The position numbers and the translations under genes are program-made. Positions 1 through 23,839 of a stretch of 64,000 nucleotides of DNA are shown piece after piece. Below the pieces are notes generated by a model. That model was not told where the DNA came from, made no database searches, and saw only the letters and a program-made list of their open reading frames with translations. The first letter of the stretch is position 1; every line of letters begins with the position of its first letter. The stretch is from Macrostomum hystrix (lineage: Eukaryota; Animalia; Platyhelminthes), in contig CATNEN010000002.1 of assembly GCA_950097015.1 (NCBI GenBank), positions 6,758,001 through 6,822,000 on the forward strand, given 5' to 3'.

Positions 1-986
1 GCCGTCGGTGCACCTTAGTGCTCTCCGCTAGCCCCGCGTCTCGTTGGGGGTTGAAGCCACGAACTAGGGCCGCCTACCTGTGTCGCCAATCACAACAGTT
101 TTTAAAAGGAAAATAAATAAATTTTATAAATATAAAAAAAGTATCGCTATCCCTTTGGGAGTGTCGCTCGCTTTCGTCTCGTCCAATTTTTCCGCCTTCC
201 CCAGGTGTTTAACACCTGAATAGCTGGTGCCAGCTTGCAGGACTTACACCAAAGCGATACATTGAACTACCTATGAATCGTTGGAATTTGCTACAATGTC
301 TATATTAGCTGTGCTATCTTCCCAGATTGTTTAACTCCTGTCCTCAATAAGGCGATCGATAGGTAAATGGATACAACAGCTCCTCTTGTACGTTCGCTTT
401 CCAAAGAGGCCCATCAGATCCTAATGAAATTCAGATGCTTTCAATCAGTTTTAGTTTTTTCATCGCATGCATTAACTGGTGTAGCGTTTCAGGAGAGCTA
501 ATTTATCTATAAGAATGAGAACTCAAAGAAGCAAGCTAGCAACAGGTAAAAGGTGCATATTTGTGATATATCTGGGAGCCTGAATGAATTTTTTTGAAAT
601 ATTCATTCACGTTTCCAGGTTTCGTTTCACCCACGGAAGTAGATCAGAGTTGAGCTTCGATTCGTTGTTTAAATTCAAATTTGCTCAATAAAGTTCTACT
701 ACCAATCTCATGCAAAAATTGGTTTATTTATTCTCTTCAATGACTTTATCTTCTTGACCACAAGTTACTACTTACTAGTACTATATTACTTTAAAGTCTG
801 TAAAAGCTTGCTGGTATTAAAAATTACGATTTTTTTTAAATAACACAATATTTTTTTGTTTAGATAAAAACATTCAAGTCTAAAGGTCGCCAATGTCGAC
901 CCATTTTTTCTAGCATAGTTGCTAGCATAGTTTTCTAGCATAGACTGCCTAGCCTTAAGATCAAATGGACGTATGATCTCACAATT

Positions 987-1490
987 TTGAGCTCTCCATT
1001 GTCTCATTTCTCCCCTGCCACATCTCTCCCTAGCAACATCTCTCCACAGTCTCATTTCTCCCCCTGCAACATCTCTCCACTATCTCATTTCTCCCCTACC
1101 ACATCTCTCCCCTATCTCATTTCTCCCCTGCCGCATCTCTCCCCTGCCACATTTCTCCCCTGCCACATCTCTTCCCTGCCACATCTCTCCCCTGCCACAT
1201 CTCTCCAATGTCTCATTTCTCACCTGCCACATCTCTCCCCTGCCACATCTCTCCTGTGTTTCTCCAGTGTCTCATCTCTCCTGTGTTTCATCTCTCCCAT
1301 GTCTCATCTCTCCAGTGTCTCATCTCTCCTGTGTTTCATCTCTCCCATGTCTCATCTCTCCAGTGTCTCATCTCTCCAGTGTCTCATCTCTCCAGTGTCT
1401 CATCTCTCCTGTGTTTCATCTCTCCCATGTCTCATCTCTCCTGTGTTTCATCTCTCCCATGTCTCATCTCTCCTGTGTTTCATCTGCTAC
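987..1490. repeat. CT-rich degenerate minisatellite (variants of TCTCATCTCTCCTGTGTTTCA)
   Basis: Visible tandem reiteration of catctctcc/tctcatttctccc motifs; explains the repetitive ORFs 987-1585. Confidence 0.9.
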
Positions 1491-3214
1491 AGGGCTCTCT
1501 CTTTAATATTCTCTACTGTAATGTTACACTCTCACTATTACTGTCTCTACTCTCATTAATACCAATATTACCTTATAGTTACTAAGATCACTATTTCCTA
1601 CAAGTGGCGCTGCCACCAAGCAGAAGGGACTGCTATCAGAGGAATGTTCCTAAGATATTACTTATTTATACTACTAAATGCACTTTTATTTATCTAGGGT
1701 AACGTTTTTCTCTTTCTCTCTCTTGTACGTGTATGCGTGGCCTGAGAGGTCTTTTGGCACCGGTTATGCACTCAATCCGTCAGGCGTACCTGTGGATTAG
1801 AGGGCCACAGCAATAAGCCTTTGGATACCTATGGATAGACTCCGAAATTCGGGTATTACTCTCCGAAAGTACTTCTTCGGGAATTAATCTGGTTATCCTC
1901 TGAATATTCTATTCGGGTCAACTGTCTTTCATATCCTCTGAACTCTCCTGTTCAGGTAAAACTTTCTCACTCTCTGAACACTCTGCTCAGGTATAGATTC
2001 TAAAGAACAAAATCTCAAAAACCTTTCTCCTTTTCTCTGATTTTAAGCGGTATGTTTGGTCACTTGTTTGCAAGGAAAGTTAATGTCCCAAAGGCACAAG
2101 AAGATGAATTTCTCGCAAGAAATTCCTTGCTTTTTGGTGTTTTATTTGCAATTATTAAGAAAAAATTATTTTAAAAATATTTTTTTTCGATTGCGATTAT
2201 TTTAACAAAAATTTATTGAGAAAAATATTTGACTGTTGAAACATTTATTCTAATCTAATCGAAAAAATTTTTTTTTAATTATTTCACTTAAAACAAATTG
2301 TTATTCGCGAAAATGTAACATAATAAAATTTTGAAATATGTAGGATCTTTATTAATTTATATTTGTAAGTTTTATTCTTTATAGTATTATATGTAAAGTG
2401 AAAAAAATAGAAATGTTTTAGAGGTTTTAAAAATAGTTTTTTCTCGTTCTCTTTTGTCTCACCTTTCTATTCAAGTAGACTAAACACGGGACAACTGTAC
2501 TAATAAACAGGTTCGCGTAAACATGTTGTTGTGTTAGAAAAATTTAACGACTTTTATAATTGCTCAAACAAAAATAGACATAGTTTACATCTTCTTTTCA
2601 GTCTCAAAAGATTTCACCTGTCTGCTTGTCCTTGATGATTGGTTTCTGAATAGGAAAGTTTAAAACGCAATAGTCAGAAAGGATTCGCAAAAAACTCTTT
2701 TCAATAGAAATTCTGAAGCACTAAGCCAGAAATGTTTCTTTTTTATCCTCTTTTGACTCTGCCCTTAAAACAGCCTCAAAACACCTGCATGGCTATCTAT
2801 GGTGCGAATAGTGCTTTCCATGCCAGGTGTAAGATCAACGATTTTTCGTGCAGAATCGAGGCTGAAATCCTTCACGCTGATGACTTGGCATCTGACAGAC
2901 AGCTTTGCATCAGCTCAAGTGCTGGCACCTGCTCAGCTGAGTCAAAAACAATCTGCATGCCTGGATACGGTGTCTAAAAACCAGGCACTGACTCTAGAGA
3001 GTCACGAGAGCGGCAACATTCGTTTTTCGCGAATTCTAAAATTGTTAGTTTTAACCTTCAGATGTGATCGTTCACATTTTTCTAAATGGCTCTTTATTTT
3101 TCAGCGCAATATGTTCCTCTATAGACACCAACAAGGCATTGGAGCTTCGGTAATGCGCTGAAATTAAAAAAATAAAAATAAAAAAAGTGATATTAATACT
3201 GCAATTTATTAAAC

Positions 3215-3285
3215 CTGCCCCCCGGGAATCGAACCTCAGATCTTTAATTCGTGAGTCCGACACCCTAACCACTAGGCTGCAACCC
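3215..3285 (-). mobile_element. tRNA-derived SINE head / tRNA pseudogene
   Basis: Minus strand reads GCAGCCTAGTGGTTAGGGTGTCGGACTCACGAATTAAAGATCTGAGGTTCGATTCCCGGG, with A-box (TAGTGGTTAGG) and B-box (GGTTCGATTCC). Stems do not pair cleanly, so not a functional tRNA. Related copy at 40445-40506. Confidence 0.55.
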
Positions 3286-3759
3286 TTTTTTAAGATACAT
3301 GTTCTGATTATTTAGATTTATGTCTTTATCCCACCGCTGTTACCAAAGTTGTTACAGGGTTATATGATTAATAACTGAGATCTCAGCGAATGCCACCAAA
3401 GCTGTTATGGGCCTATCCTATCAATCAATAAGATCTCACTGCTGTTACCACAATCAAGTAGGTATTTATTATGCTTTAGACTGGCGGTCCTAAAATGGGC
3501 CGTTTAACTCCCGATATTCCGCGATGTTATTATTTTCGCGAGCTTCAATACTCTAATGGTATAGCGTTTACTTCACACGATCTGGTAGCGTCTTTTGCAC
3601 GAGCGGTAACTTAGGCAACTGAATGGCCAGCTCAGTCCTAGAAAAGTGAGTTTGATTTAGTCAGTACTCGGGGTTTACCGTAGACTCGATGAAGTCGATT
3701 TAGTCAAGTCCCTCTAAATCTGTCTTTTGTAACTTTTATTAGGTCAAAGTTAATTTTAT

Positions 3760-4130
3760 TTAGTCGTTACAGCCATGAGATACACTTATGGTTTGAATGG
3801 TACAGGGTTGCCAGTTTGGGAGCAACATAATCAAGCGTTGCCGCATGTCATTGAGCGTCAAGGTGGGTGTTTCACCAAAAAATTCAACAGGGCTGTCAAG
3901 CATAGCTTCAGTTAAAGCTTTTGGCTTATTTCCACCTCGTCTCAATGCCTGAACGCGTTCACTCTGTTCGTATTTAACGATAACATTTCTGGCAGACTGA
4001 CATGGAATGTTTAGCTGTCTCGCTAGTTGCTGCCAATAGACATTGCCAATAAAGGCGTCGATGAGTCTTCGCCGATGAGTCATCATAGTCTATGGTTAGA
4101 ATATCCTCGGCTGGAATCAATGGTCGTCGG
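3760..4130 (-). pseudogene. Truncated, frameshifted Tc1/IS630-superfamily transposase N-terminal HTH fragment
   Basis: RRPLIPAED (one frame) joins RRLIDAF..YWQQLARQLNIP..SARNVIVKY...VQALRRGGNKPKALTEAML...P.LTL..MR.RL (ORF 3760-4086). This resembles the HTH region of DD34E/DDE_3 transposases; no catalytic domain or TIRs found. Confidence 0.55.
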
Positions 4131-5320
4131 CTCGCTACGCTCGCCTCGAGACCATTAAATACAGCCTCGGACATTCTAACCAAGAATGTGAATTAAACGG
4201 CGTTTATTATATATATACTTACACTACAACATTATTATTACTTACACTACAACATTACAACATTATATGACTGAAAGGAATCAAGTACAAATAAAGTATG
4301 CTTTGTGTCACTAGCACGGCTTACAATAATGCCATACGTAATGTTACGGTATCTTTATCGGTGCCCTTGATACCCAATTAAATAGAAATGGAAATCTATT
4401 TTCCAGACTTCAAATAAACTAAAAGGAACTGAGTTATACAAGAAAGTTTAGCTCAAATGAAATAAAATGAACTTAATTAAAAAATTCTAAACTGAACCAA
4501 AAGGCAAGTGAAGAGACCAAAGAACTTTAGGCATCGAAGCGTTGAATACGTATGACCACACAATGCGTACATGACATGAATATTTAGGCAGCATATTTGG
4601 TCACGTGGTTTGCAAATATGCCAAATCTGTCCTTCAACAGCCAGTCACGCTGCTGTTCAAGGCCTTAGCGGGTAGGCCTTTCTAAAAAAGTCCAAAGCCT
4701 TCCATCTTGCTCCCGCTGACAAACGCAATCAGCAAGCAACCCACGGCTGCTTTTGAATGCTTGGCCAAAAAAGGAAGCGGTAGTTTTTTGCTTGCTAGAT
4801 AGAATTCTACTAAGTCATGCTGTTCCATGATTGGTTACCGAGCTGTAGAGCTGTTGTTGTGTTCAGAATTGTAGCTGTCCTGTCAGGATTTACGTACTTG
4901 TTCTAAATTTATAGGCGTACTTGAAAAATGTTTTTTTATTGACTAGAGTCATGCTTGATCAGAGTCAGGTCATTGTCCTTGCTGCTGTTTTTAATGAGAC
5001 AAACCAGTTTATACTGCATGCTTCCGTTGTGTCTTCATTCTCTCGTTCCTCTTCCTGTCTCTCCAAAAGCAGTTGCAAAACAATTTTCCTAAACGTTGTT
5101 TTTCTGGTCGCTGGTGAAGTAGCAAACAGAGAAATCGATGTTGCGATGTGTGAATTTTAAGTTTGCATTTTGTATCGAGCTGGGACGGCGCCCCTGGCAA
5201 TAGCGCTAATTTGACTTTGTATTTTCCTGATTCAAGTAACATTTTTTATTTTAGCATCGTAAAAGCGAGTCTGTTTTGTGTTCAGAGGCGTCACAGGTTT
5301 GCATTATGCGGATCAGCGGG

Positions 5321-5836
5321 TCAGAACTCGCAGAACTGATGAAGGTAGCTCCGGCGACACCAATTGCAGCAGCAGTTGGACACGACGTCCTCAGTTCGGC
5401 GAACAGCGGAGCAGCGCCGGATTTGCTGGCTGCGATGCAACACGGCCTTCGAGCCGACTGAAAATGACCATTTTTTAATATTAATCTATTGGATCAAGCG
5501 AGTCGGTGGAATTGATTCCACAGAAAATGCATACTTTGAACAGAACGAGCCAGCTCAGGTGTTTCGGCATCGGAGTCGGCATCGGAGCCGTACAGCTCAG
5601 TCCCGCGCTCTCTGCAGACTGCAATCAAAGCGGCCTTCAAATCAGCGCCACAGGCTCGGATCCACTGGGCCTGAAATTGTTCGTTATCTATTTTTTGTTG
5701 CTGCTCAAAATAAATACTGACGGCTCAACTAGACTTAGTGATAGACAAATCTTACCGGGTTCTTTTTCTGACAGCTGACTTCAACGATCATGACACCAAA
5801 AACAAGCATAGCAACAAGCGATAGTGTCAGGCGCAT
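5321..5836 (-). CDS. Insulin-like peptide precursor, paralog 1 (3 exons: 5780-5836, 5535-5670, 5321-5457; 109 aa)
   Basis: Hand-spliced at GT-AG introns (phases 0 and 1): MRLTLSLVAMLVFGVMIVEA|QWIRACGADLKAALIAVCRERG...QIRRCSAVRRTEDVVSNCCCNWCRRSYLHQFCEF*. Signal peptide, B-chain CGxxLxxxLxxxC and A-chain CC-x3-C-x8-C signatures are present. Confidence 0.9.
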
Positions 5837-5925
5837 GATCAGCAAGGTGAGTTTTATTTCTAGAGAAAGTTGCAGCTCGCAGCCAGCTTGCTATGGAATC
5901 GACTGAGCAAGCGCCCTTGCTGCCA

Positions 5926-5968
5926 TATTTATAGGGAGTCGAGGCGATTGCAGACCGCATCTGATTGG
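5926..5968 (-). promoter_or_regulatory. Candidate TATA (TATAAATA, 5926-5933) and CCAAT (5964-5968) boxes of ILP paralog 1
   Basis: Minus-strand motifs about 90 and 130 bp upstream of the ATG at 5836; similar arrangements upstream of paralogs 2 and 3. Confidence 0.4.
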
Positions 5969-8113
5969 TGGCCCCATTCGCTGTCCGATCCCTATTTTTA
6001 GATACTATTTTTAGCAAGAACCTTTCCATTTTAGTTTGATGATTTTTATTATCATCATTGACAAAAAGGCGAAAAACAAATCAAAGCATGACGAAAAGTA
6101 CTGATGCTATGCCGAATGTATTCGAGTATCACCGGGCTGCGTCTTAGGTACGCGACGTTGCATCTCATTAAACCCCCGGGTTTCCACAGTGACCAAAAAC
6201 AAAATCCCGATTTAATCAGCTGGCAGCCTTCAATGGCACGAATGTTTTTATTGCTAAATCTTAGTTTTCTCGAAGCTTTAAGAGTAACTATGAAATCTGT
6301 AGTTTTGCAAACCAGAAATGCTCCTGCCTTGATTTTACTATATAACGAAACAGCCATTTGTTGATTGTCCATTAAACGACAAGCGTGCACTAGTTGATGT
6401 ATTTTTAACCGGCGAAATAAACACTTACAAGACTTGCCAAAAATAGGTCATGCAATTTCAAATAGTCTATGGCAAAAGTGGGGTTCGAATTGCCATAGAA
6501 TTCTCTAGCTCTATGTTAAGGTATCGAATTCTATGGCAGTATCACGCCGGCACTTTTTTCTTCCAACCTAAAAACCGGCTGTAAATAAACAAATTTAAAA
6601 TAAGTAGTTTTGGCCCGAGAAGCATGATCAAGCTCATCGGTCATTTGTTTTTTTACTAGCTCTCAATTCAGGCGCATAAAACTTTCCGGTGATGCACGAT
6701 TCAAATTTACATTTTTTCACTTTTTTCATATTTTTGGGTCTATTATTTGGTTTGGAATTTGGAATACAATAGAATGACAATGATTAATGAATGGATGAAT
6801 GGACAGCCACCACTCAAATTGCGCTGCGCTTCCAAAAGCCGTGTACAACGATTCCGTCCATGGACTGTGTAGACCAACTCCAAGAAGGAACTGCTCTTCA
6901 TGCTCTGAGCATGGATTAAATGAACGTTATTATGAATATTTTGCAGGCTGAAAGATTCAGTCATTTACTCCCAGAGATCGCTTACTCACAGTAGTGTCAA
7001 GAGTTTGACATATTTATTCTGCTCATTTGAATCGGAACAATTTATATTTATCATCAGTTCCGGAAAAGGACTTCAGATTGATAGCTTTTATTATCTGTGA
7101 CATGGTGACGTGCCAACTTGCAATCATAGTGCACATTCACCCGTTCTCAAAATCCTATTACTGACTGCATGAACAGGTTTTGTCTATCACTTGGTATTTA
7201 AAAATCGATCACTTGCTTTGCTTGGCAGTTCTAAAAGTAGAACCTATAATTACCAATTAGCAACAAAATAATGGGATCAATAAATAATTCCACGAATATC
7301 GTACTCTGCTCTCATTCATTCACCGAACGCCAGGACATTGTCCAGCTGCAGGATGATGCCAACAGATGCCAGATTTATCAGCGGTTGCAAAAAGCTGTTC
7401 CAGCAAGTCAGTAGATTTCATCGTGTTGACAGCGCCTTCTAGCAGCACCAGATCGCCTTTTACAGTCCAGATGACTTAGGCCACGTTGCAGCATGCGTGA
7501 CTGGACATGCCTGCTGCTTAACAGACCCACATGTTGGGCAGGACAGGTCAGGAGGTTTTAAAAACAATGCTGCGTGTGATTCACCCACCCCCTCTTTAGC
7601 GAAACGATGCAAAAGTTGTCAAAATAAAACACTACAGTTTCCTAAAAAATGCAAAGAATGCAAGCCCCCCCCGAGTAATGTCCAATCAGCAGGGAGATGC
7701 ATCTCAGAACATTCTTGGACTATCACTATTCTTTTGAATACTGTATTAGCTCATGCGCGAACTACGTGTGTACTACGTGTTACATAGTCGTGAATTTTTA
7801 GCTTTATTCGTCAGCTTCTTTCAAATGATTCAAATGCAGAGCATTCTCAGCGTGTCGAAGCATTTAGGAGCTAAGAAAGATATTTAAAGTTTTTTTGCAT
7901 GTCAATGCCGTCAGAGTTTCGTCAGTTAAATATATTTCTATCAAAGATGGCTTGAAGGATAAACACAGAAAGGTAGCAGAGCGTATTTAGGGGTGGGGCC
8001 TTGCTTTAACTAGTAACAAAATAAACGGTTCAATCCGAACACGGGAATATTTGAAGTTGAACTACCATTGTCTTCGCCCGATCCATACAGCTCAACTGGT
8101 GTGTCATCCGGTC

Positions 8114-9081
8114 TTAAACGGGGCCGGGTTTGGCGCAGTATGTGTGCAGGTAGGACACGCGGCACCACCTGCAGCAGCAGTTGTAAACAATGTCAACACT
8201 CTCGATGTAGCACCTCAGCTGGTTGATGGACTTGTTGCGCTTTGTCAGTAGTCTGGTCACTGGAAAATGGGAACATTTCTTAGAACTGAGGTTCCCAATT
8301 TACTGCAGTGCTCGACTATGGCTTTATTTTTTCTCCTTGTATAATTTTGATGTAAAAATCCTTAACTGTTACTTAAGTAGTTACATTCGAATTGATTATA
8401 ATTTACTATCTTTTTATGAGTCTCATCGACTGTTATGAGACAGTGTAAAGGGAAAGCTTTATGACGTTCAAGTGGCCATAGACGCCATGAGCTTTTGGCC
8501 GTAGACATCCATTCAATCAACGCATGTTCATGTGTGTCAATTTATCAACTCATGCTTGAGGTTTTTAAAAAATCTAAAAGCTACAACAAAATGTATTGTG
8601 CCTATGGTAAGGCCGGATGCAATTCCTATTGGCCTCTGCACACCAGGTGGCATCAGCTTGACTACCACAGCGTGGCGCTCTCACCGTAGCTAACTTCCGA
8701 ACTGCTGTCGAATACGCCACCCCTGTCGGCGCAGGCGGAGTGCAACTCTTCGACTAGTCGATGACCGCACTCATTCAGCCAGCGAGCCTGCAAGTTTGCA
8801 TGGACAAGCGGAGGATCAAACGAATTGCAAAATATAATTTGGGGTCATCAGTGGCTCTGAAAAGGCAAGCTTGATTTCGGAGTTATTCTAACCGATGTTA
8901 GCTAATGTTTTTGGTCCTTTAAGAACCTTTACTTCAAGTACTATTTAGCATGCTTCGATTAAAACTCAAATTCTGATCTCACCGGGTTGTTGTTTTGTGA
9001 GCAGTTGCTGTGCCAGCACAGGTTGGCGAGACACAGAACTAGAAGCAATGCGTGACTTCCGCGAAGGGTTAATCCGACCAT
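8114..9081 (-). CDS. Insulin-like peptide precursor, paralog 2 (3 exons: 8983-9081, 8685-8787, 8114-8259; 115 aa)
   Basis: MVGLTLRGSHALLLVLCLANLCWHSNCSQNNNP|ARWLNECGHRLVEELHSACADRGGVFDSSSEVSY|VTRLLTKRNKSINQLRCYIESVDIVYNCCCRWCRVSYLHTYCAKPGPV*. GT-AG introns with the same phases (0, 1) as paralog 1. Confidence 0.92.
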
Positions 9082-10223
9082 GGCGAGTCTTTTTCGAGTA
9101 GGCGGAGGGCGTCGAGCGACGAAGTTCTTGGGTCCCAACAGGATTTAGATGGCTAAATCGCTTGACTTTACTGAGTTAGAGAGATTATCTGATTGCTGCT
9201 CGGATTACTGCTCCAGTGTGAAACTCTCGGGCTTTTCAGTGTGAAAGGCTGCGCTCCTTTATTGTGGAAGTCGCCCTTCTCAGTCCCCGTCCCATTGGCT
9301 GCCAAATATGATGCGTAGGCAGCCAATCCTTTCTAATCCGGATGACTGAACCAGACTGCACGCTCTGTCATGGGCCGGCTGATGTTACTCAAATATCGAT
9401 GGTGATGCTGGAGCTGCATCGGATTATAAGTCGAAACAATTATAACACTAGCCTGTAAGCCATGGTACCTATGTCTTTTATGCTTCTACGAGAATACTCA
9501 TTGAAGACAGTAGGTGGTATATAGGCTCGTATGCGCTCTATAGAGCCTGCTATATATTAGAAAATATTTAAGTTGAAGTAGCCTAAAATATCGTGATATC
9601 GAGCTGTTCGAAACTAAGAAAAAACGTGTACGTCTTCCTTTTTCATGCTGTGTATTATATTTTTAGAAATTTTCTTTTCGGTCGCCAGTGTGTGGTTCAA
9701 TAAGTTTAGTATAGTAGACTAGCTGAAACAACCTCCGTAAATTAGTTCTTTAGCTTGATTCGGCATCTGTTGGCCGACTATAATCATAATTTGTAGCTTC
9801 ATGACTTCAAATGCTTCAAATGCATGAGACAAGTATTTGAGTTATTGCTTACTGTCAGAATTTACTTCTGATTGGTGCTTCATAAACGCGAATTTGAAAA
9901 AACGTTGGAAAGAAGGCTAAACGTTAGTTTTAACTACTTATGCTACGAAGCATAGATTTTCGTCGCAGAGCTGTTTGCGTCCATTTTTATTAAGACAAAA
10001 GGTTGATTAGCATGACAAAAAATCAGCACAAATGGCGCAATCTTGCATGCAAAATTGGGTTCAAGAGGTTCAAGAGGGCCAAAATACTCCGCCCTCTGTC
10101 TGCGCTTCTGCTTTTGGGACTAAAATGGCTTAAAAAATAATATTGTCCGAGAGAGTAGGAGACAAACAGTCGCATGGATGCTGGCTCTGGAATGTCCACT
10201 GGCTAGCAGCTGGTTGCTGATCT

Positions 10224-10757
10224 TCAAATTGGTCGTTCGTAGGCGCAGTACTGGTGCAGGTAGGACACCTTGCACCAGCGGCAGCAGCATTGGTTCACCA
10301 GATCGTCGTTCTGGTTAAGCATGCAGCGCAGGTCGATCATGCTGGTGGAGCTGCGCTTGCTGGCCGCCACACCTGCGGATGGTCCGGGTTCGAATTGGCA
10401 TGAACAGAACTAAATCTGAGTCAGATTTTTTTCTGGAAGGACAAAGAGCAACTCACGCGCCATCAGGGCCCTTGTGGAGGCCATTTGCCGTCGGCGGCTC
10501 ATGAACTGCCTCTGGCCGCTGGAGCTGTCGTAGACTCCGCCACGGTCGGAGCACGCGTTCACCAACTCCCGGACCAGGCCATCGCCGCATTCGTTCAAGA
10601 AGCGATCCTTCGAACAGCGTTGCATGGAAGGGAGAATAAGATTTGCTCTGATGGAAAGATATAAAAGCGAACGTCAGCAACTTACCGGATCGCCGCGAGC
10701 GAAACAGTAGCAAACGGTGCAGGCCACGATCAGTGCGATCAAGATAATTCTGCTCAT
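10224..10757 (-). CDS. Insulin-like peptide precursor, paralog 3 (3 exons: 10686-10757, 10457-10607, 10224-10372; 123 aa)
   Basis: MSRIILIALIVACTVCYCFARGDP|DRFLNECGDGLVRELVNACSDRGGVYDSSSGQRQFMSRRRQMASTRALMA|RVAASKRSSTSMIDLRCMLNQNDDLVNQCCCRWCKVSYLHQYCAYERPI*. Exon 2 is partly visible as ORF 10410-10625. Confidence 0.92.
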
Positions 10758-11476
10758 CTTTAGGAGGTTGAGTCGCTCGCTCGGCAAAGATAGAATCTCA
10801 GAGAGAAATCAAGCAAACGCGACGGGGATCTGGCGCGGTTTTTGGCGCTGGACCAGGGCCCTGTGGTATTTATGCCCGCGACAGGTTCAGGGGAGGCATC
10901 AGTTTGGCTGCGTCACACGCCAATAATTGGGCATCGGCTTTCAAAAGAGCAAAAATCTTTAAAGCAGCGATTTTCTAAAGCCTAACTGGCACAAACCAGT
11001 CCAGCTGCTAGGTTCACCTGCACTGACACCTGAACGTTGGCGTGCCGAGGCTGGCACGAACAACTGTCTGGGGCTTTCGGTTTCACAGCCACCGTGCTCA
11101 GTGGCGCGGACGTAATTGGGATTTAGTAGAGGATGGGTGGATGATTGGGGGAAATTTCGAGAAAAACAAGCGATCGAATGGCCCTGCCCGCGTCTGCGCA
11201 AAAGCGAAAAACAAAAAGAAAAATTTTAAATGGCTCTGTCGAAGAGGAGCAAAGTTTTCATCTCAGTTCTTATGAAACCGGGACGAGCTCGTCATAATCT
11301 AGTCGCGTCTGGAGAAACGTCTGGAATCTTATCTAGCATCTTATCGTTAATTTGACGATTCTCTTAATCAAAGATATTTTATACCGAGTCGTCAGCTTCA
11401 GATGAAGTGCAATTTCAATTTTCTTGCGCAAGACAGAAGGACAGCTAGAGTCTTATCCGTACCTGCGATCGAAGTA

Positions 11477-11544
11477 TCGGACCGTTAAACCAGTGAGTCG
11501 AAGCCAGGCGGTTGGCACGGCGTGCGCAAGTTGGAAACTGGCCC
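11477..11544. repeat. 68-bp direct repeat, copy 2 (candidate B2 of a Ngaro-type split direct repeat)
   Basis: tcggaccgttaaaccagtgagtcgaagccaggcggttggcacggcgtgcgcaagttggaaactggccc; 63/68 identical to 11843-11910. Confidence 0.9.
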
Positions 11545-11842
11545 TTAAGAATCGAGCATTATCAATGTGCTTAATGAAATTTTATTTAATGAGCGAGAGA
11601 CGAAGGCAATTTAAAAGAGAAACACTATTAATTGTGAATTAAAAGCAGAAACATTGGCGCAAAAAAAATCAATAAGCCTCTCGGAGAGACGCGCCGGCGC
11701 ACAGCGCGCCACACTAAATAGGGCTGGGAAAGGCCGACCCCAAGAGGGGGGCGGCCCCGCGACCAGGCAACGTACATGCACCCCCGCACCAATGCACAAG
11801 CCCCCAACACCCCGGTTTAACCTCCAACCAAGCTACGCTCGG

Positions 11843-11910
11843 TCGGACCATTAAACCAGCGAGTCGAAGCCAGGCGGTTGGCACGGCAGGCGCAAGTTCG
11901 AAACTGGCCC
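11843..11910. repeat. 68-bp direct repeat, copy 1 (candidate B1)
   Basis: tcggaccattaaaccagcgagtcgaagccaggcggttggcacggcaggcgcaagttcgaaactggccc; lies 46 bp downstream of the recombinase stop codon. Confidence 0.9.
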
Positions 11911-11956
11911 AAACCCAAAACGGAAAGGAGAAGCAGGGAACAGAAATTAGATTGAG

Positions 11957-12957
11957 TTAGAGAGCGCCCAGGCGACGCGCCAGCCCATGCACGGCTGCCC
12001 TTGCATCCGAGTCCTGCACAGACAGATAGCGAAACACAGAGCCGCTCTTCCAGTCACCTAGCTGCTTGATTACTGGCAGAGGAACACCGAGCTGCATCGC
12101 CGTCGTAGCGCCGCCACGCCGCAGCCCGTGGCCTGTGAAGACACGCGGCGAAAAACCCGCCGCAGCGCACAGAGATCGGAGGCGGCCATCGAAACCGCTA
12201 GCTGTCAGGGCCGTCCACCCGTTTGCCGACCAGGTCGCAAAAAGATGAACAGGACCAGGGGCTTGATCCACCAGGTTGGCGGCCAGCTGCTGCTTCAGAG
12301 CTCGGTACGGGAAAATGGCCTCTAGCCCGCCATCCGGAAGCTTCGGGAGAAACACACGCTGAACTCTGTCGCCAAACTGGTTCGTCTTGGAATGCTTCAC
12401 TACCAGCTCACAGTCGCGCTCCGAGAAGGTGACACTCGACGCTGACAAATCGCGCACCAGATCGAGCTCCCCTGCCTGCGTGGTGACATTCGCCTTTCGC
12501 AGCATTCCCCACCAGGCCGTCAGAATCGCCGACCAGAAAGCGATGTCTTTGCGTGGTTTCTGGTCAAGATAGGCGTGCAGCTTGAGAAGATCGGCGACTC
12601 GGATTGGCTCCTTCGAGTGCTGTTGTCGACCGAGAAACCGGCGAAGGCCGCGAAGCACCCACTTGACCATCGGTGTCTCGCACGGGTCCGGCCGACCAAT
12701 CGCTCTGAAGTACAGAGAGACTGCGTTCGCATACGCATGGCAACTGCGGAAAGTGGTTAGCCGATTGGACAGCTCAGCCAGGTATTCAGCCACGTGTACC
12801 GGCTGCGGTCGGGCTGGTGTCAAGCGCTTGGAACTGCAGAAACGCAACCAGGACGCGAGCTGCGACCGGTAACTCCGCTTCGTGTGGGGAGCGATTGCAT
12901 TGCCGACGAGAAATGCGCAGCGCTGGCTGAGACGGTCGGGAGCCTGGCGCGGAGGGC
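11957..12957 (-). CDS. Tyrosine recombinase of DIRS/Ngaro type (frame open upstream of the ORF-track start; true start unresolved)
   Basis: Catalytic set present: GMLRKAN (R), HSKTNQF (K), GHGLRRGGAT (H-x-x-R), LGDWKS (W), VFRYL (Y). The upstream in-frame sequence NAIAPHTKRSYRSQLASWLRFC matches the N-terminal SAM-like helix of DIRS-group recombinases. Confidence 0.9.
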
Positions 12958-13454
12958 CTGCAAAAAGAGAAACGCGAAAGCAGAAGCGCGAGTGCCCTGC
13001 AGAGGAAAATCTGAAGCGGAGACAGAAATTCTTGAAATTTTGTTCGAATTTAATATTTTAATGACGGTCAGTTGTCAATCGAAAATCTGACCCGTGCGTG
13101 ATTTCCGTTGGCTGCTGAAGCTTCCAAATCCCCAAGGTCCTAGAGACTGATCGGGACTTCAAAGCTCTCTCGAAAAATTGTAGCATAGATTGACTATCTG
13201 TGCAAGAGGTAACACACAGGTGCTATCAGTAGCCAAACAGCTAAATGAAGTACCATTTTCCTGCAAAGAAGATACACATGTGTTATTTTTTGAGTCTCCT
13301 AATGAAAAATCAGATGGACCCGGCAGCAGCTGCTGCTGAGAAACCTGGGACCAACCTTTGATGAAATGTTACGAGAAATCTGCGACAAGCTAAGGGCGAT
13401 ATGTTGATACAATTAAGCTTCTGTCTAACCTAGGTATTGCTATGCTATGCGAGT

Positions 13455-13737
13455 TGACGCTTCGCTAGACGCTACGCTAGACGCTACGCTAGACGCTACA
13501 CTAGACGCTACGCTAGACGCTATGCTAGACGCTACGCTAGACGCTATGCTAGACGCTACGCTAGACGCTACGCTAGACGCTATTCTAGACGCTACGCTAG
13601 ACGCTATGCTAGACGCTATTCTAGACGCTACGCTAGACGCTACACTAGACGCTACGCTAGACGCTACGCTAGACGCTACGCTAGACGCTACGCTAGACGC
13701 TATGCTAGACGTTACGCTAGACGCTACGCTAGATGCA
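13455..13737. repeat. 12-bp minisatellite (GACGCTACGCTA)n, about 23 copies
   Basis: Direct reading; source of the LDAT-repeat ORF. Confidence 0.95.
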
Positions 13738-14588
13738 AGACTCGTTAGTTACATTCACATTTCTTGTAACTTCTTTAAGACAATCTAATTTTAAAAAGAC
13801 ATTATTCATTCAAATGTGAAAATATTCACCAATCAAATCAAATCACCAGTCTAAAAAAACTTTTAGGATTCTAAAGCTGAGGATTGTAAAACTGAGGGAA
13901 ATTGAACAGCTATTTCTATCGCGTCTGTACCGGAAGCAATTATCTTCTCAGTTTTCTGTTCTGCGCGTCTTTACAGAAGCCAGTTGATCAGACGATTGGG
14001 AAATATTAGAAGCAGATTTGCAGCAGATTTATTATTTGCTGTGACTCCCAATTTTCTGCATTATCTGCGTCTGCAACTGAGTCCTCGCAATTGAGTCCAC
14101 TGTCTCATTGTGTGTATCTGTCTCCACTACCTGTCCCTCATGTGTGTGTGTGTGTCTGTCTTGTTGAACATTTTATAATTTCCAACAGAAGCTGTTAACA
14201 ACTACTTGTCCCGAAGAGGTCCTCCAGTAATTAAGGCCTTACCTGATTGGAAGCACTTTCATTGATTCAAATCAAACTCGTGATATAGCTTTGATTGAAG
14301 TTAAAGCAATTCATTAAAGCTCATTGCAAAAACGAAATGTATTAAAAATTCAATTACGCTTGTAAGACAACTTAAACGAAAGTCAAGTTTTAGTCAAATA
14401 TTTTGCTTTGTCTCGTAAAAACATTTTTTGTCGAAGGACTCAAATTATCAATGATTGTCTGGCTTAATAGGGAGCTAAGGCACTTTATACTTTTCTAGTA
14501 CAATCACTTGCACTAAAACTTGCACTAGTAAGGGAACAGGGTTTGTAGACGGATTAATAGCTGGAGGGATCAGTGTACAGGTTCATGG

Positions 14589-15000
14589 GTGGATGGATGA
14601 ATGGATGGATGGGGATGGATGGATGGATGGATGGATGGATGGATGGATGGATGGATGGATGGGGATGGATGGATGGATGGATGGATGGATGGATGGATGG
14701 ATGGATGGATGGATGGATGGATGGATGGATGGATGGATGGATGGATGGATGGATGGATGGGGATGGATGGATGGATGGATGGGGATGGATGGATGGATGG
14801 ATGGATGGGGATGGATGGATGGATGGATGGATGGATGGATGGGGATGGATGGATGGATGGGGATGGATGGATGGGGATGGATGGATGGATGGGGATGGAT
14901 GGATGGATGGATGGATGGATGGGGATGGATGGATGGATGGGGATGGATGGATGGGGATGGATGGATGGATGGGGATGGATGGATGGATGGATGGATGGAT
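14589..15000. repeat. (GGAT)n microsatellite with GGGGAT interruptions
   Basis: Direct reading. Confidence 0.97.
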
Positions 15001-15705
15001 AATGCATGATTGGACTGGTTAGAAAAAAGGAGAAAATAGAATAAACTAATGTTAAAGTAATTCAATTTTCATGAAAACGTTCAGAAAGCGAGTAAAAAAT
15101 TGAAAACTTAAACTTAATATAAACAAAAATGTGCAAGTCTATTTTAAAGAAGTTAGCGCGATTTACTTTTTTCTCAAATAAAGTAAAAATGATGTAAAGA
15201 AATATCAAAATGATTCGCTAAAAGGATTGCACCAATCAGGTAAAAATTTTAGGGCGCACAATAAACAGGAGGGTAAAACGAAAAAAACTTGTAGATCGGA
15301 AGAAAGTATTATGCAATCGTTATACTGAAGTTGACTTCTAAGAAAACTAAACTACAAGGCAATCGGAATTAAACTGAAATTTAAAATAAAGCTAATTGAC
15401 TAATCAGGTTTCTAAGAAAAACGGCGATTATTTGTATTCACTTAACGTTTCTCTGCCACATTAGTATTTACTTGAATATATAATTTAAACCCTAAATCTT
15501 ATTTGATTATATATATTTTCTAAATCTTCATTTTGCTGTCTAAAATCCTAATTAGTTTAAATCGAACACCGAATTTACGAAAGCTAGTGTGAGCTCAATA
15601 GTTGGATTCTTGCTTTCATAGAAATTAATCATAGATTTACTCCTTAGAAACAAAAGACTTTCTTCTTATTTTATGTCTAGGAAACTTTCGTTATTGATTT
15701 CTTTA

Positions 15706-15707
<2 letters not shown>

Positions 15708-15740
<33 letters not shown>

Positions 15741-15999
15741 GCAGGAGGGCCGCGGGCAATGGCACACAGATACTGTACGCAGGCATACGCTCACACAGGT
15801 GTGTACATCTGCCCTGACTTTCTCATCTTCAGGCAGTGTACACTCTCACTGTGCCTTGGAGGTTGGCCCTCAAGGGCGTAAATTGCACGACAAGCCCCCA
15901 AGCCTTCTCTCCGCGGCTGCGCCCCAAATAAATGTGGCCTCGCCGCGGAATCGAGCTCAGGGACCTCGGTGCGAAAGGCAAACGCGTCAACGCTCTGAT
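15708..15999 (-). mobile_element. tRNA-derived SINE with (ATT)n 3' tail
   Basis: Minus strand begins with a tRNA-like head (CAGAGCGTTGACGCG...GAGCTCGATTCCGCGGCGAGG) and ends in (ATT)n at 15708-15738. An internally deleted copy lies at 27708-27800. Confidence 0.6.
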
Positions 16000-16467
16000 T
16001 GATTATTGATTATATAAAAATTCTAAAATATATCAAAACGCTTCAAAAATAATAAAACAAACACAGTAAATAAATAATAATCAAATCGCAGTACTATGCA
16101 CGTTTTTGAACTGGAGGACTGTTGTCAAAATATTGCCTTCGCTAAAAAACAAATGTCACGGAAATCCGGTAGGCTGTACTTAAAAATGGCATCTCACTTT
16201 GTTCTGCTGAATAAATAATAAGGCAAAATTCTTTAGCCATGAAAGTTAAAAAAATTAAAGCACACAAAATTGGAATGTATTAGGAAGACATGAACAGGCC
16301 TCCCTAGTTAAACAATGATGAAGTTCCGAAAAAAGTGATGATGTCGTTGTTAAATAATGTAAAAAGGATTTGAGACATGAAATAGAAAATATCAGGTATG
16401 ATGTAAGTGTGATGCAGGATAGGAATCATTAGAAGCGAGCAAATATCAGTACACGAGGAGAAAACCT

Positions 16468-16685
16468 GCCAAGAACGGTCTAGAACCCGCCAAGAACGGT
16501 CTAGAACCCGCCAAGAACGGTCTAGAACCCGTCAAGAACGGTCTAGAACCCGCCAAGAACGGTCTAGAACCCGCCAAGAACGGTCTAGAACCCGTCAAGA
16601 ACGGTCTAGAACCCGTCAAGAACGGTCTAGAACCCGCCAAGAACGGTCTAGAACCCGCCAAGAACGGTCTAGAATCCGTCAAGAA
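16468..16685. repeat. 21-bp minisatellite (AAGAACGGTCTAGAACCCGCC)n, about 10 copies, overlapping the ATPase stop codon
   Basis: Direct reading, period 21. Confidence 0.95.
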
Positions 16686-17037
16686 ATCGCGGCTTCAATC
16701 CGAGCCAGCCATCGGGCGTCATTCGCTGCAGCAGAAGTTTCCTCGCGGCCTCGTGAGCCAGGATGAACAGAGCAAACGGCATTGCTGGCAGCCACCAGGT
16801 GAACCGCAGAGGCTGCATCTGTGCGGCCTGGTTGAGTCCGGGACTGTACACAAGCAGAACAGCCAGACCAGTCTCCAGCAGCAGCGCTGCGGTCAGATGG
16901 CGATAGTTGGCGAGCTGCAGCCGGGAGCTGTCTGCTCGGGAGCCGCAGGCGAACAGGTTGGCCCACTGCAGCAGCACCAGGCTGCTGAAGAACACAGCGT
17001 GGGCGGTCTGTTGCAGCCGCGTGCGCTGCTGATGCGA
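16669..17037 (-). CDS. ATP1A-like: Na+/K+-ATPase alpha-like gene, last visible exon (8 of 8; M8-M10)
   Basis: Acceptor cccgcag at 17038; SHQQRTRLQQTAHAVFFSSLVLLQWANLF...LETGLAVLLVYSPG...PLRFTWWLPAMPFALFILAHEAARK...LDGF* aligns with TYEQRK..TCHTAFF.SIVVVQWADL... Confidence 0.88.
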   Translation of the reverse strand, partial: SHQQRTRLQQTAHAVFFSSLVLLQWANLFACGSRADSSRLQLANYRHLTAALLLETGLAVLLVYSPGLNQAAQMQPLRFTWWLPAMPFALFILAHEAARKLLLQRMTPDGWLGLKPRFLDGF

Positions 17038-18681
17038 CTGCGGGGGCGGCAGGCGGGTTCCGGGGCAGTGACAGGACGCGAGGAGACGAGTTTCACTTTG
17101 TCAGCATCATAGGGTGCGGATTAAGCTATGGGATGAGAAGGTTAGACGACTGGACAAAAAGTGCACTGGAAAAGTCATGGATTTTAGAAGGCTTACAGAA
17201 TGACGTCCGTTCGTGGCTTAAAGGTTGTGATTGACTATTTGACAGCTGACAGGCTCAGGCTCAGCTGACTGAATGATATCAAATGCTGATAGACAGACAG
17301 ACGAACAGGCAGAGACAGAAAGAGAGACAGACAATGGCAAAGAATGCAGAATGAAGGAAAAAATACAATAAAAAGCAGCACGCACGCATACAAAGCTGAT
17401 AGACAAACGGAATAATTGCAGTTATTGGCTCTGTCGGCACTTAGAAGCACTTAAAACAGGCTCGTTGGAAACTGCCTGGAAGCAGTTAGAAGCACCTCTT
17501 GTGAAATCGCGACTTTGTGTGTCGGCATTATCCCAATATCCTCGGGGAAGAGACAAACTCTTTGGCAAAGGATAGACACTCCCAGGCAGAAACAATAAGA
17601 GTTTGGCATCGTAAATACTCGTAGCATTGTAAAGAAGCAGCTAAACCGAAGCACGGTGAGTCAACAAAATTCAATAGACTAAAACCAGTGACTATTTTTC
17701 CTAGTGCAGATGCACTTCAAACATTCAACAACGGCAAAGATTTGCCAGCAGAAAAAGCCTGTTTTGGCTCGAAAGCAACTCGGCGACTCGCATAAATTAA
17801 AAGCTCGGATGTGTTCAAGATTCGATTTGCATAGGCCGCTGAGTCATGTGACTCAAGAGCCGCCTCAAGAGCTGCGCAGTTTCAGGGGAAGGTTACTTTG
17901 AGCACTACCGGATGAGCACATGCTGAGCACATGTCGGGGTCGCAAACACCGACCACGCGTCAACTTGAGTTGTTGTGGTTTTTTTATAAACCCGCACGAT
18001 AATAAGATGAGGCTTTCTAAGAAGTGACGCGCTGCGATTTCTAAGAAACTACAAGGAAGCCAAAAAGCTGTAAAAGGACTGCTATATCGTCCTTAAGAAA
18101 AACAGCTGACATTTCTTTCAAGAATTTTCAGTGACATTTTTTTTCAAATTCAAACGCATTTAAAAACCAAACTAAAACCAGCTGGCTTATACATAAGGAG
18201 TGCCTTAAAACAAATAAAACGTTTTCTAAGAATTCTAGAGAGCCAAAAATTCTCGAAGCTGTTTGTTATTCCATAAGAATTTAAACTGTTCTACAAACAA
18301 AGAAAAACATACATTTTCAGAATCACAAGTCAGGCCATTTAAATTAGTGAAGGTTTTAAGCAGTAAGAGAAAGTTTCTATGAAACAGAGGCTTACTTGCC
18401 ATGAAAATCCAGACGAAGAGTAAAATGTCTAGCTAAAGGACACAAATTGTTCTGGTAAAATTAGGTCTCGCATCGAATCGACATTCAAGTCGTGAGAAAA
18501 CTTACTCCCCATTGTTTTCTATTTAAATTAATCTTCTTTAGAATAAAGGTTCTTGTTTTTCTTGTTTTTTAGAATAGCACTAGCAAATTTTGCCCCCCTT
18601 CGGGGAGCAGAAATATTTTAAATTTGTCTAGTACTCGTACATACTTCTTAGCAGCTGTATTTTCAGCTTTTTTAAAGATAC

Positions 18682-19150
18682 AATGATCCCCCAGTTGACA
18701 ATGTTCCCCAGTTGAAAATGATCACCCGGTTGACAATGATCCCCCAGTTGACCATGATCCCCCAGTTGACAATGATCCCCCAGTTGACAATGATCCCCCA
18801 GTTGAAAATGATCACCCAGTTGACCATGATCACCCAGTTGACAATGCTCCCCCAGTTGACAATGATCCCCCAGTTGAAAATGATCACCCAGTTGACCATG
18901 ATCACCCAGTTGACAATGATCCCCCAGTTGACAATGATCCCCCAGTTGACAATGATCCCCCAGTTGACAATGATCCCCCAGTTGACAATGATCCCCCATT
19001 TGATTATGAATCCTCATTGATGATGATCACCCAGTTGACAATGATCCCCCAGTTGACCATGATCCCCCATTTGATGATGATCCCCCCAGTTGACCATGAT
19101 CCCCCGTTTGATGATGACTCCCCATTGATGATGATCCCCAGTTGACAATG
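18682..19150. repeat. 18-bp minisatellite (ATGATCCCCCAGTTGACA)n
   Basis: Direct reading. Confidence 0.95.
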
Positions 19151-19295
19151 TTCCTCAGAAGAAGATAATATACGTATTTTTATATTAGCTGCTTTTGTAA
19201 AAAACAGAGAAAAACAACATTAAATGAATAGTAGACAAAAAATATTATCATACAAATATATATATATATATATAGATAGAAGAAGAATATATATA

Positions 19296-19478
19296 GAAGA
19301 CTGACCTCTATCATGATCCTCATATGGGAAGACTGACCTCTATCATGATCCTCATATGGGAAGACTGACCTCTATCATGATCCTAATATGGGAAGACTGG
19401 CCTCTATCATGATTCCCATGTAGGAAGACTGGCCTCTATCATGATCCCCATATGGGAAGTCTGACCTCTATCATGATC
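19296..19478. repeat. 32-bp minisatellite (GAAGACTGACCTCTATCATGATCCTCATATGG)n, about 5.5 copies
   Basis: Period 32 (19296, 19328, ...). Confidence 0.9.
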
Positions 19479-19677
19479 AGGATCCTCAGGTGTGGAGACT
19501 GAGTAAAGTTAATCGTCGGAGAAATCTTCAAAAAGCTACTCACCTGTGAATCCAGATGGTGCAGATGCTGCTGCTGCTGCTGAGGTGATCATTATGACGT
19601 TATAAGATAAAAAAACTTAAATGCAGAGAATTCGATTCAATGACAAAAGAAAAATGTTGCCATGATTCACACCCACC

Positions 19678-20112
19678 CTGGTTTAGCCATGATTCAAGCT
19701 CTGGTTTAGCCATGATTCAAACTCTGGTTTAGCCATGATTCAGACTCTGGTTTAGCCATGATTCAAACTCTGGTTTAGCCATGATTCAAACTCTGGTTTA
19801 GCCATGATTCAAACTCTGGTTTAGCCATGATTCAGACGCTGGTTTAGCCATGATTCAAACTCTGGTTTAGCCATGATTCAAACTCTGGTTTAGCCATGAT
19901 TCAAACTCTGGTTTAGCCATGATTCAGACGCTGGTTTAGCCATGATTCAGACGCTGGTTTAGCCATGATTCAGACGCTGGTTTAGCCATGATTCAAACTC
20001 TGGTTTAGCCATGATTCAAACTCTGGTTTAGCCATGATTCAGACGCTGGTTTAGCCATGATTCAGACGCTGGTTTAGCCATGATTCAAACTCTGGTTTAG
20101 CCATGATTCAGA
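19678..20112. repeat. 23-bp minisatellite (CTGGTTTAGCCATGATTCAAACT)n, about 19 copies
   Basis: Direct reading; two unit variants (AACT/GACG). Confidence 0.95.
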
Positions 20113-20864
20113 CACTTGTTTTGCCATGCAAAAGTGAATTAAAAGTTTCCCCTTTATTTTCAAAACTAAATAAAAATTTTGCTTTGCATCCATCACTACT
20201 GACTGACAATTAATTTAAATATTTGACGCAGTGAAGAGTCGAACCAGGGACACTTCGCCTAGCCTAGCCTAACCTATTCCTAGTGCCTACACATCGGCTA
20301 CTCCGACTGTTGGATTGTGGATGCAAAAATTAGCCTTATAAAATGAATTCTCAAAGTTCTGGCTTTGTATAAATAGAGTACACTTAGGTGGTGTACATTA
20401 ATTTCAAATTTGTGTCCAGATTGTGCAGGCTTCTAATTCAGTCAGCTAGGGGGTGTTGCGCAAGTTGACGATGCAATTCCAATTCAGTGGCCGTCAGTGA
20501 AATTCTCAATAGGCCAAGATCTTTTGACCTTTGAAAAAATAAGCAAAAAGCATGTTTTTGGAACCTTTATCCCATTTAGAATAAAGCAATTTCTTAGCAA
20601 AAAGTTGCGTACCGTTGCTGGAAAATGTGGCGTCTTTTGGCGAAAGAATGGCGAAAATCGGTTCAGCCGTTTTTTCTCGTGGAAAAGTGACCCACAAGCA
20701 AGTACGAGTCGTAGTATAATAATACATTCTGAGACATCCCGTCTGTACACCAAGAGCCCCATTGGGGAAAAATTACACAAGCAACTTACGTTTGATACAA
20801 CTCAGCTTAATGCTACTAAGGTACATGGATATACTATCCCCTCAGCAGTAAAAAACCAGTGTCT

Positions 20865-21442
20865 CCCCAGCAGCAGAGAACTAATTCCCCCCCCCAGCAG
20901 CAGAGAACTAATTCCCCCAGCAGCAGAGAACTAATTCCCCCCCAGCAGCAGAGAACTAATCCCCCCCTGCAGCAAAAAACTAATTTCCCCCCCAGCTGCA
21001 GAGAACTAATTCCCCCCCCTCCAGCAGAAAACTAATTTCCCCCCCCCAGCTGCAGAGAACTAATTTCCCCCCCAGCTGCAGAGAACTAATTCCCCCACCC
21101 CAGCAGCAGAGAACTAATTCCCCCCCAGCAGCAGAGAACTAATTCCCACAGCAGCAGAGAACTAATTCCCCCAGCAGCAGAGAACTAATTCCCACAGCAG
21201 CAGAGAACTAATTCCCCCAGCAGCAGAGAACTAATTCCCCCAGCAGCAGAGAACTAATTCCCCCAGCAGCAGAGAACTAATTCCCCCAGCAGCAGAGAAC
21301 TAATTCCCCCAGCAGCAGAGAACTAATTCCCCCAGCAGCAGAGAACTAATTCCCCCAGCAGCAGAGAACTAATTCCCCCAGCAGCAGAGAACTAATTCCC
21401 CCAGCAGCAGAGAACTAATTCCCCCAGCAGCAGAGAACTAAT
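20865..21442. repeat. About 23-bp minisatellite (AATTCCCCCAGCAGCAGAGAACT)n with variable C-run
   Basis: Direct reading. Confidence 0.95.
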
Positions 21443-21644
21443 GTTCTCCAAACAGAAGAGAGCCTCCATAATACCAGAATGGAGGCTACTTGCAGGCTAC
21501 CAAACTCGCAGCAAGAAATGTTGCCCTTTTTCTTTGACAGGAAACCATTGCCCCCAAATAGCAAAGTAACGATGTGTCAATCGTTGTACTCAGCCCAGAA
21601 GGCAACAAATATCTCCTGTTACATGTGGCACGGTAGATACATTT

Positions 21645-21775
21645 AGAAAACTGTTAAACGCATTTAGAAAACTGCGGGACACATTTAGAAAATCGTTGGA
21701 CACATTTAGAAAATCGTTGGACACATTTAGAAAATCGTTGGACACATTTAGAAAATCGTTGAGCACTTTAGAAAA
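21645..21775. repeat. 21-bp minisatellite (ACATTTAGAAAATCGTTGGAC)n
   Basis: Direct reading. Confidence 0.85.
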
Positions 21776-22798
21776 CGGTTTTGATCAGTCTTCGTCGAAT
21801 AAAGTTTTATAATTATTACTATAAAATAAGTTATTTTTTTAATCGAATAACGCTTAAAGCAATGCTTAAAAAATAGAAAAATTGGAAATAATTTACGCTC
21901 TCAGCTGCGCTCAATATTTTTTTCTTGCAGTTCTGAATCTGATAACGCTTGCAGCTATGCACAAAAAATATTTCCCAAGTTTTAGTATCGAATAAAACTT
22001 GCTGCTTTACTCGAAAAGAAAAGCTAATACTATTTTCTGAAAGCGAGTACAGGAATAATAAAGCTAACAAATATCTGCTTCGACAGTAGCTGACCAAAAG
22101 CGCTTACTATTTATACTCGAACCCAAAAATGCCCAAAAAATACTAATAAACAGGAACTTACGTTTTTAACTGCTGATGTTTAGAAGATTAAAAGAAAAAG
22201 AAGCAGTAACACAGCTGATGCTGAAATTCTACCTGCATTCTACAAAAGCATAAAAGTACTTTACTTCGGAGCTCGATGAAAAAAAAGCGGCACAATGATC
22301 GAAGTCGAGACAAGGTTTGACAATAGAAAGGCTGCAGTTTTATGGATAGAAAGGAGGAGGAGAGGTCTCGCTAGCATTGAGCATCATAAAAGCCCAATCA
22401 TGAAATCTGCTATGTACGTTTTGCGTATTCAAATCAAATCACTCGATCAGCCAAGAGACAAATTTATAAACGTACGTACGGGTCGAAAAGCAGTGACGCA
22501 ATCCTATTCAATTGAGAGTATCGGGCCCTGTTCTGTGCTATATACCAATGCACGCGCGGGCGAGAAAAAGCACCGATGCAATCTAATAAAACTGACAGTG
22601 TCCGGCCCTATTCTAATTTAACCTTGTTTGGCCTCCTATTGAAAGCAATAGGAAAACTCGTTTTTCGAATATTTAATACCCTTGGCATTGAGACAGAATG
22701 ATGAAATTTGATCAGTCTAATCCTTGGATGAATTGGCACTTTTTGGTGAAAACAGGAAAAAATTGGTCTAGCCATTCAATCGCTAGAGCATTTCAGAT

Positions 22799-23100
<302 letters not shown>

Positions 23101-23220
23101 ATGACTTTAACAAAATCCAAATATTTGTTAAATCTTTTGATGAAGCAAAAAGTTATTCGTTTTCTAAGAAACGAATAAACCTATTTTTTCTAGCAAATCG
23201 TTTAGAAATGTTGTCCTCAC

Positions 23221-23832: not shown

Positions 23833-23839
23833 CTGAATG

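Follow-up and report, generated by a model that had tools for sequence, protein, structure and literature searches.

We identified three insulin-like peptide (ILP) genes, designated gA, gB, and gC, in a 64,000-nucleotide (nt) stretch of Macrostomum hystrix DNA (contig CATNEN010000002.1, positions 6,758,001 to 6,822,000; the whole stretch is hereafter called the window). Judging from the sequence, the genes probably form a tandem cluster of three functional ILP genes of the flatworm-type eight-cysteine class in a Macrostomum-type flatworm. The cluster is an ordinary, fairly old, and small one, and it is partly conserved in Macrostomum lignano. A preliminary description of this region had proposed three co-oriented three-exon genes with introns in phases 0 and 1 and closed frames, and this organization is confirmed on the minus strand. 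The exons and promoter-like element of the cluster are as follows (positions in the window).

10868..10874 (-): TATA-like heptamer CATAAAT, located 117 nt before the gA start and also found 93 nt before the M. lignano ortholog
10686..10757 (-): gA exon 1, with the start codon and signal peptide, then a phase-0 intron; the junction matches that of the annotated ortholog Mlig006842
10457..10607 (-): gA exon 2, B chain (two Cys), most of the C peptide, and the RRR site, then a phase-1 intron; Pfam Insulin positions 4-31, E 0.002; 64% identity to M. lignano locus L003
10224..10372 (-): gA exon 3, KR site, N-extended A chain C-x11-CCC-x2-C-x8-C, and stop; Pfam Insulin positions 51-81, E 0.0019
8983..9081 (-): gB exon 1, with the start codon and signal peptide; supported by a hydrophobic stretch and a phase-0 donor that follows Pro, like those of the other two genes, but not directly by a homolog
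8685..8787 (-): gB exon 2, B chain followed by a short C region without a dibasic site; Pfam Insulin positions 4-26, E 0.011; 67% identity to the M. lignano gB-like copy
8114..8259 (-): gB exon 3, KR site, A chain C-x10-CCC-x2-C-x8-C, and stop; Pfam Insulin positions 59-81, E 0.15; 63% identity to the M. lignano gB-like copy
5756..5836 (-): gC exon 1, with the start codon and signal peptide; a TATA-like box lies 97 nt upstream
5535..5670 (-): gC exon 2, B chain followed by an acidic C region without a dibasic site; Pfam Insulin positions 2-28, E 0.012
5321..5457 (-): gC exon 3, HR where gA and gB have KR, RR on each side of the upstream Cys, A chain C-x12-CCC-x2-C-x8-C, and stop; Pfam Insulin positions 48-81, E 0.079

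The three-exon genes span 10757-10224 (gA), 9081-8114 (gB), and 5836-5321 (gC), all on the minus strand, and encode proteins of 123, 115, and 117 amino acids (aa), respectively. All six introns have GT-AG ends. The first intron is in phase 0, directly after the Pro residue closing the signal-peptide exon, and the second, in the C region, is in phase 1. The exons were joined for frame closure and paralog alignment, and none of the three spliced frames contains an internal stop. The introns (77-425 nt) have a GC content of 0.33-0.45, compared with 0.46-0.65 in the exons, and the GC content at third codon positions (GC3) is 0.64-0.81. The N-termini are hydrophobic (best 11-residue Kyte-Doolittle mean, 2.8-3.2), and the signal peptides were called on hydrophobicity alone. 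These N-termini and the cysteine motifs bear out the signal peptide, B chain, and A chain previously assigned to each gene, and the B-chain motifs quoted then (ECGxxLVxEL..AC.DRGG and the ERG type) are found in the genes. The gene models have two weak points. The acceptor of gA intron 1 is AAG, though the ortholog junction is at the same position, and gC intron 1 has in-frame alternative acceptors at 5703, 5700, and 5664. A TATA-like box was also looked for upstream of gB, and none was found.

Among the exons of the three genes, only gA exon 2 gives an in-frame open reading frame (ORF) of at least 60 aa (ORF 10410-10625), as had been noted from the ORF track. ILP genes are missed by such tracks because their exons are short, and the annotation is corrected here in this respect. 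Pairs of B- and A-chain motifs occur three times in the window, versus a mean of 0.013 and a maximum of 1 in 300 composition-matched shuffles, a lenient control in that the motifs were composed after the genes had been seen; chance motif matching is ruled out by this control as the source of the cluster. No fourth paralog or remnant was found within the window. A CC-containing stretch near 7490 was examined and is not a further copy.

gA, gB, and gC belong to the insulin superfamily. Database searches were run exon by exon or with M. lignano proteins. The Pfam Insulin domain PF00049 is matched in its first half by every exon 2 and in its second half by every exon 3 (E 0.002-0.15). A profile of the three exon-3 peptides matches the A chains of IGF-II, DILP5, bombyxin, and insulin in the PDB, and the third Cys of CCC aligns with insulin position A8. 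Searched against 1.84 billion representatives, the same profile retrieved six proteins, all from M. lignano and most of them named IlGF-domain proteins. Two further homolog searches likewise returned M. lignano proteins only; the ILPs of planarians, flukes, tapeworms, molluscs, and annelids were not reached by these homolog searches. The exon-wise Pfam matches, the PDB matches, and the M. lignano relatives support the insulin-like identity originally proposed. A phase-1 intron in the C domain is a hallmark of insulin-family genes (PMC8286064), in agreement with the earlier statement that such an intron after the B-chain region is typical of the superfamily, and it is present in gA, gB, and gC as well as in the M. 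lignano ILP genes.

Outside the signal region, each protein has eight cysteines, of which two belong to the B chain and the other six are encoded by exon 3. The arrangement that characterizes the superfamily, a B chain with C-x11-C and then an A chain with CC-x3-C-x8-C, is found in all three. The exon-3 cysteines are laid out as C-x(10-12)-CCC-x2-C-x8-C, in which the spacer after the upstream Cys is 11 (gA), 10 (gB), or 12 (gC) residues long, and the proteins stop 2-6 residues beyond the last Cys. The upstream Cys is invariant in four M. lignano ILPs. The dibasic sites differ among the paralogs. In gA, RRR follows the B chain and KR precedes the A chain, while gB has KR alone; in gC, HR takes the KR position and the upstream Cys is flanked by RR on each side.

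The closest counterpart of gA is Mlig006842 (PAA85943), which is 62% identical over the full length and has both annotated exon junctions in the same positions and phases. The phase 0/1 junctions of the window genes are shared by four annotated M. lignano ILP genes, namely Mlig006842 and the IlGF-domain genes Mlig020476, Mlig029872/027486, and Mlig003858. With full-length proteins, all four score above the Pfam Insulin cut-off (26-35 bits; Mlig006842, 26.4 bits), whereas for Ins_beta the gA ortholog scores under the cut-off. M. lignano ILPs resemble those of the window in the three exons, intron phases, junctions, eight-Cys pattern, and tandem arrangement. They number at least five intact genes plus one decayed copy, and their loci are of three kinds.

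L001, L005: three ILP genes in tandem, turned towards the 3' end of a P-type ATPase gene
L004, L006: single ILP gene behind another ATPase gene
L003, L007, L008: gA/gB pair

At the third kind of locus, an unannotated gB-like gene lies on the same strand about 1.4 kb behind Mlig006842 (L003:11979-14382; also L007 and L008). Unlike gB, it lacks two conserved cysteines: Trp replaces the first A-chain Cys and the last Cys is absent in all three assembly copies. Its signal-peptide exon was looked for and not found. The M. lignano gB-like copy is probably decayed, because of the loss of the two cysteines and the missing signal-peptide exon. A tandem repeat occupies the region in front of its exon 2. 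No gC-like gene was found in the 10 kb behind Mlig006842.

The substitution rates indicate purifying selection on gA and gB. The nonsynonymous and synonymous rates (dN/dS) are 0.32/0.70 for gA versus Mlig006842 and 0.27/0.87 for gB versus the M. lignano gB-like copy. The ratios are about 0.3-0.5 overall, and in each of the five pairs compared dS exceeds dN. The dS near 0.7 and the identity of about 62% to the ortholog also set the window apart from M. lignano itself.

Several points weigh against reading gA, gB, and gC as functional ILP genes of known action. The splice junctions are predicted from sequence alone, and the dN and dS values are estimated from only about 70-100 codons. Single-exon Pfam Insulin scores (13.5-19.6 bits) are under the 23-bit cut-off, as is expected because each exon carries half a domain. 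The AlphaFold model of the gA ortholog is poor (pLDDT 52), and the top match in a fold search with this model, mini-IGF-1, is not significant (E 4.2). The receptor, tissue, and cleavage sites considered below are inferred by analogy.

We compared the paralogs with each other and with the M. lignano genes to trace the history of the cluster. The higher-coordinate pair, gA and gB, is 55% identical, versus 31-35% between gC and either of them, in accordance with the earlier view that one paralog is more distant from the other two than these are from one another. An unrooted tree without an outgroup was built for gA, gB, gC, and six M. lignano genes from per-exon alignments placed end to end. In this tree, where no branch is firmly supported, gB joins the M. 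lignano gB-like copy (81/95), and gC groups weakly, on a long branch (end branch 1.79), with two genes from another M. lignano cluster (81/92). A clade of all three window genes, as a recent species-specific triplication would give, is rejected (p-AU 0.004), and so is an exclusive gA-gB clade (p-AU 0.023). The counterparts of gA and gB stand in the same tandem order in M. lignano. Since clades restricted to the window are rejected and gA and gB each have a counterpart, the sequences indicate that the gA/gB duplication predates the split from M. lignano. The weak grouping of gC with another M. lignano cluster further suggests that gC may not derive from the same local duplication. The local ILP expansion claimed in the preliminary description thus holds as a real tandem cluster, but not as a species-specific one: gA and gB are old, and gC may stem from a separate duplication.

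The cysteine pattern is best compared with that of Schmidtea mediterranea ILP-1, which by eye (supplement of PMC2953531) shares the signal peptide, two-Cys B chain, upstream Cys, CCC-x2-C-x8-C, and total of eight cysteines. In Smed-ILP-1, a Cys lies ten residues before CCC-x2-C-x8-C and the spacer contains KK (PMC2953531 supplement, 2010). A dibasic site between the upstream Cys and CCC is therefore common to Smed-ILP-1 and gC, whereas gA and gB have none in the spacer and have KR before the upstream Cys instead. The Cys-bearing fragment of Smed-ILP-1 is a low-confidence mass-spectrometry assignment (PMC2953531 supplement), and a single gene is described in that species in contrast to three here (PMC2953531). 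A new cysteine scaffold is rejected as an interpretation of the window genes, the eight-Cys pattern being already seen in planarian ILP-1. Molluscan MIPs and nematode beta-type peptides have one extra Cys per chain, and in gA, gB, and gC both extra cysteines are on the A side; this layout is not new either, because planarian ILP-1 has it. Like these two groups, octinsulin and some multinsulins combine the six-Cys core with one predicted extra disulfide (PMC8286064). Octinsulin differs in that its coding sequence has a phase-1 intron only, versus two coding introns in gA, gB, and gC (PMC8286064). The window genes lack the long C-terminal extension and accompanying late phase-0 intron that mark the IGF type, as well as the phase-2 intron of the dilp7/relaxin-like or multinsulin type.

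The A-chain signature CCCX2CX8C is also present in schistosome ILPs; the likeness covers this CCC signature, and the schistosome ILP is unlike the window genes in being encoded by one gene with two exons and an intron of 8-12 kb (PMC5391603). Planarians and flukes have been described with one ILP gene and tapeworms with two. Tandem ILP genes are already known in flatworms, since the Echinococcus genes emilp1 and emilp2 are adjacent (PMC3923246) and tandems are annotated in M. lignano. Taken with the M. lignano loci, the window gives Macrostomum five or more ILP genes, arranged in small clusters whose copies have been gained or have decayed from one species to another. Knowledge of how insulin-family peptides are built or act is unchanged by this cluster.

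Each gene would produce a secreted prepro-peptide, from which the signal peptide would be removed as the three canonical insulin disulfides form. The fourth disulfide would most likely connect the Cys at A8 with the upstream Cys inside the N-extended A chain. A PC2-type convertase would then cut at basic sites. gA would be cut at RRR and KR to give B and A chains with release of the C peptide, while gB, cut at KR alone, would give a B chain retaining a C extension. gC, with RR flanking the upstream Cys and without KR, could give a single chain or three disulfide-linked pieces, as KK in planarian ILP-1 allows. Cleavage at such basic sites can be hindered by disulfides close by (PMC8286064), and because of this the processed products are predictions. 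The most likely receptor of the products would be the insulin-receptor tyrosine kinase, through which they would adjust growth, the division of neoblasts, or the germline, as planarian ILP-1 does. Echinococcus ILPs bound EmIR2 in two-hybrid tests (PMC3923246). RNA interference (RNAi) of planarian ilp-1, as cited in bioRxiv 10.64898/2026.10.10.758126, leads to degrowth and to fewer mitotic stem and germ cells. Planarian ilp-1 is expressed in testes and in cells of the central nervous system (CNS). Planarian ILP-1 governs body size, neoblast division, and the germline. The Macrostomum genes are candidate regulators of growth and stem cells, suited to RNAi and receptor assays in a model of regeneration and sex allocation.

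A bolder and rather doubtful proposal is that processing splits Macrostomum ILPs into functional classes, with gA two-chain without the C peptide, gB retaining its C extension, and gC single- or three-chain, and that the gB class has been lost in M. lignano. If true, such classes would provide a regenerating flatworm in which separate insulin signals, directed to stem cells, gonads, or mates, could be compared as they occur in nature.

The peptides might also be exocrine or seminal products, that is, allohormones of glands or gonads rather than systemic growth hormones. Such a role would fit the fast divergence, in which orthologs are about 60% identical within the genus, the turnover seen as decay of the gB-like copy in M. 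lignano, and the occurrence of ilp-1 in planarian testes and of adult- or gonad-biased ILPs in parasites. We consider it unlikely, given that dibasic convertase sites suit neuroendocrine processing and that planarian ilp-1 is also expressed in CNS cells. Slightly less likely still is that at least one of these real ILPs acts in a relaxin-, gonadulin-, or octinsulin-like manner through an LGR-type G-protein-coupled receptor instead of the insulin receptor. Some eight-Cys and other insulin-related peptides have been proposed to use LGRs (PMC8286064), and the long end branch of gC shows it to be highly divergent. The nearest solved relatives are, however, IGFs and insulins, in planarians this architecture is linked with ilp-1/inr-1 signalling, and the dilp7-type phase-2 intron is absent.

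It is improbable that one or more of the genes, most likely gB or gC, is silent or decaying. The state of the M. lignano gB-like copy, the lack of a TATA-like box in gB, and the lack of both a clear ortholog and a KR site in gC point in that direction, whereas in all three genes the frames are open, the splice sites and the eight mature cysteines are preserved, and GC3 is high, and dN is below dS in every pair. An ancient bilaterian triplet (IGF, gonadulin/octinsulin, and dilp7) retained in a flatworm, which three co-oriented adjacent genes would recall (PMC8286064), is rejected, since gA, gB, and gC have one flatworm-type Cys pattern and one intron layout in common, gA and gB are 55% identical, and no gene has the IGF or dilp7 features. 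A tandem cluster of functional ILP genes acting through an insulin receptor is thus preferred.

The ILP cluster lies behind the 3' end of a Na/K-ATPase alpha-like gene (16669-30519, minus strand). Two of the three M. lignano ILP loci (L001:15848-21538 and L004:1-6143) are likewise found next to the 3' end of a gene for a P-type cation ATPase. The window ATPase is 39-57% identical to the first (L001/L005-type) and 32-50% to the second (L004/L006-type), and its orientation is unlike that of the first. These positions suggest an old ILP-ATPase neighbourhood, possibly a duplicated block; one-to-one synteny is not proven, because the ATPase identity is low and the orientation differs. The phosphorylation motif of the window ATPase is CTGKTG, versus CSDKTG in both ILP-adjacent M. 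lignano ATPases.

Literature naming Mlig006842 and the other M. lignano ILP gene ids, or treating Macrostomum ILPs generally, was not found. One M. lignano ILP (L001:5405-6175) has a variant A chain, CC-T-C-GR-C, with a loop one residue longer. Seven kb behind the M. lignano ILP pair, a PRLamide-repeat neuropeptide precursor (L003:17594-18133) contains many AWYVSPRL-amide copies (pyrokinin-like); the window has no counterpart of this gene.

No Rfam families were found in positions 1-16500. Between the ATPase gene and gA lies a tyrosine-recombinase ORF (11957-12847, minus strand; Phage_integrase, E 7e-6), beside which is a 68-nt direct repeat (11477-11544 and 11843-11910, 93%). An inverted repeat of 20 nt (6491-6538, 85%, 8-nt loop) is located between gB and gC. 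A short ORF at 3760-4086 gives a weak paired-box-like match (E 4e-4) and probably represents what is left of the DNA-binding region of a Tc1-type transposase. Farther away, at 58887-62945, an intact 1352-aa gypsy-like gag-pol ORF contains protease, reverse transcriptase, RNase H, and integrase.

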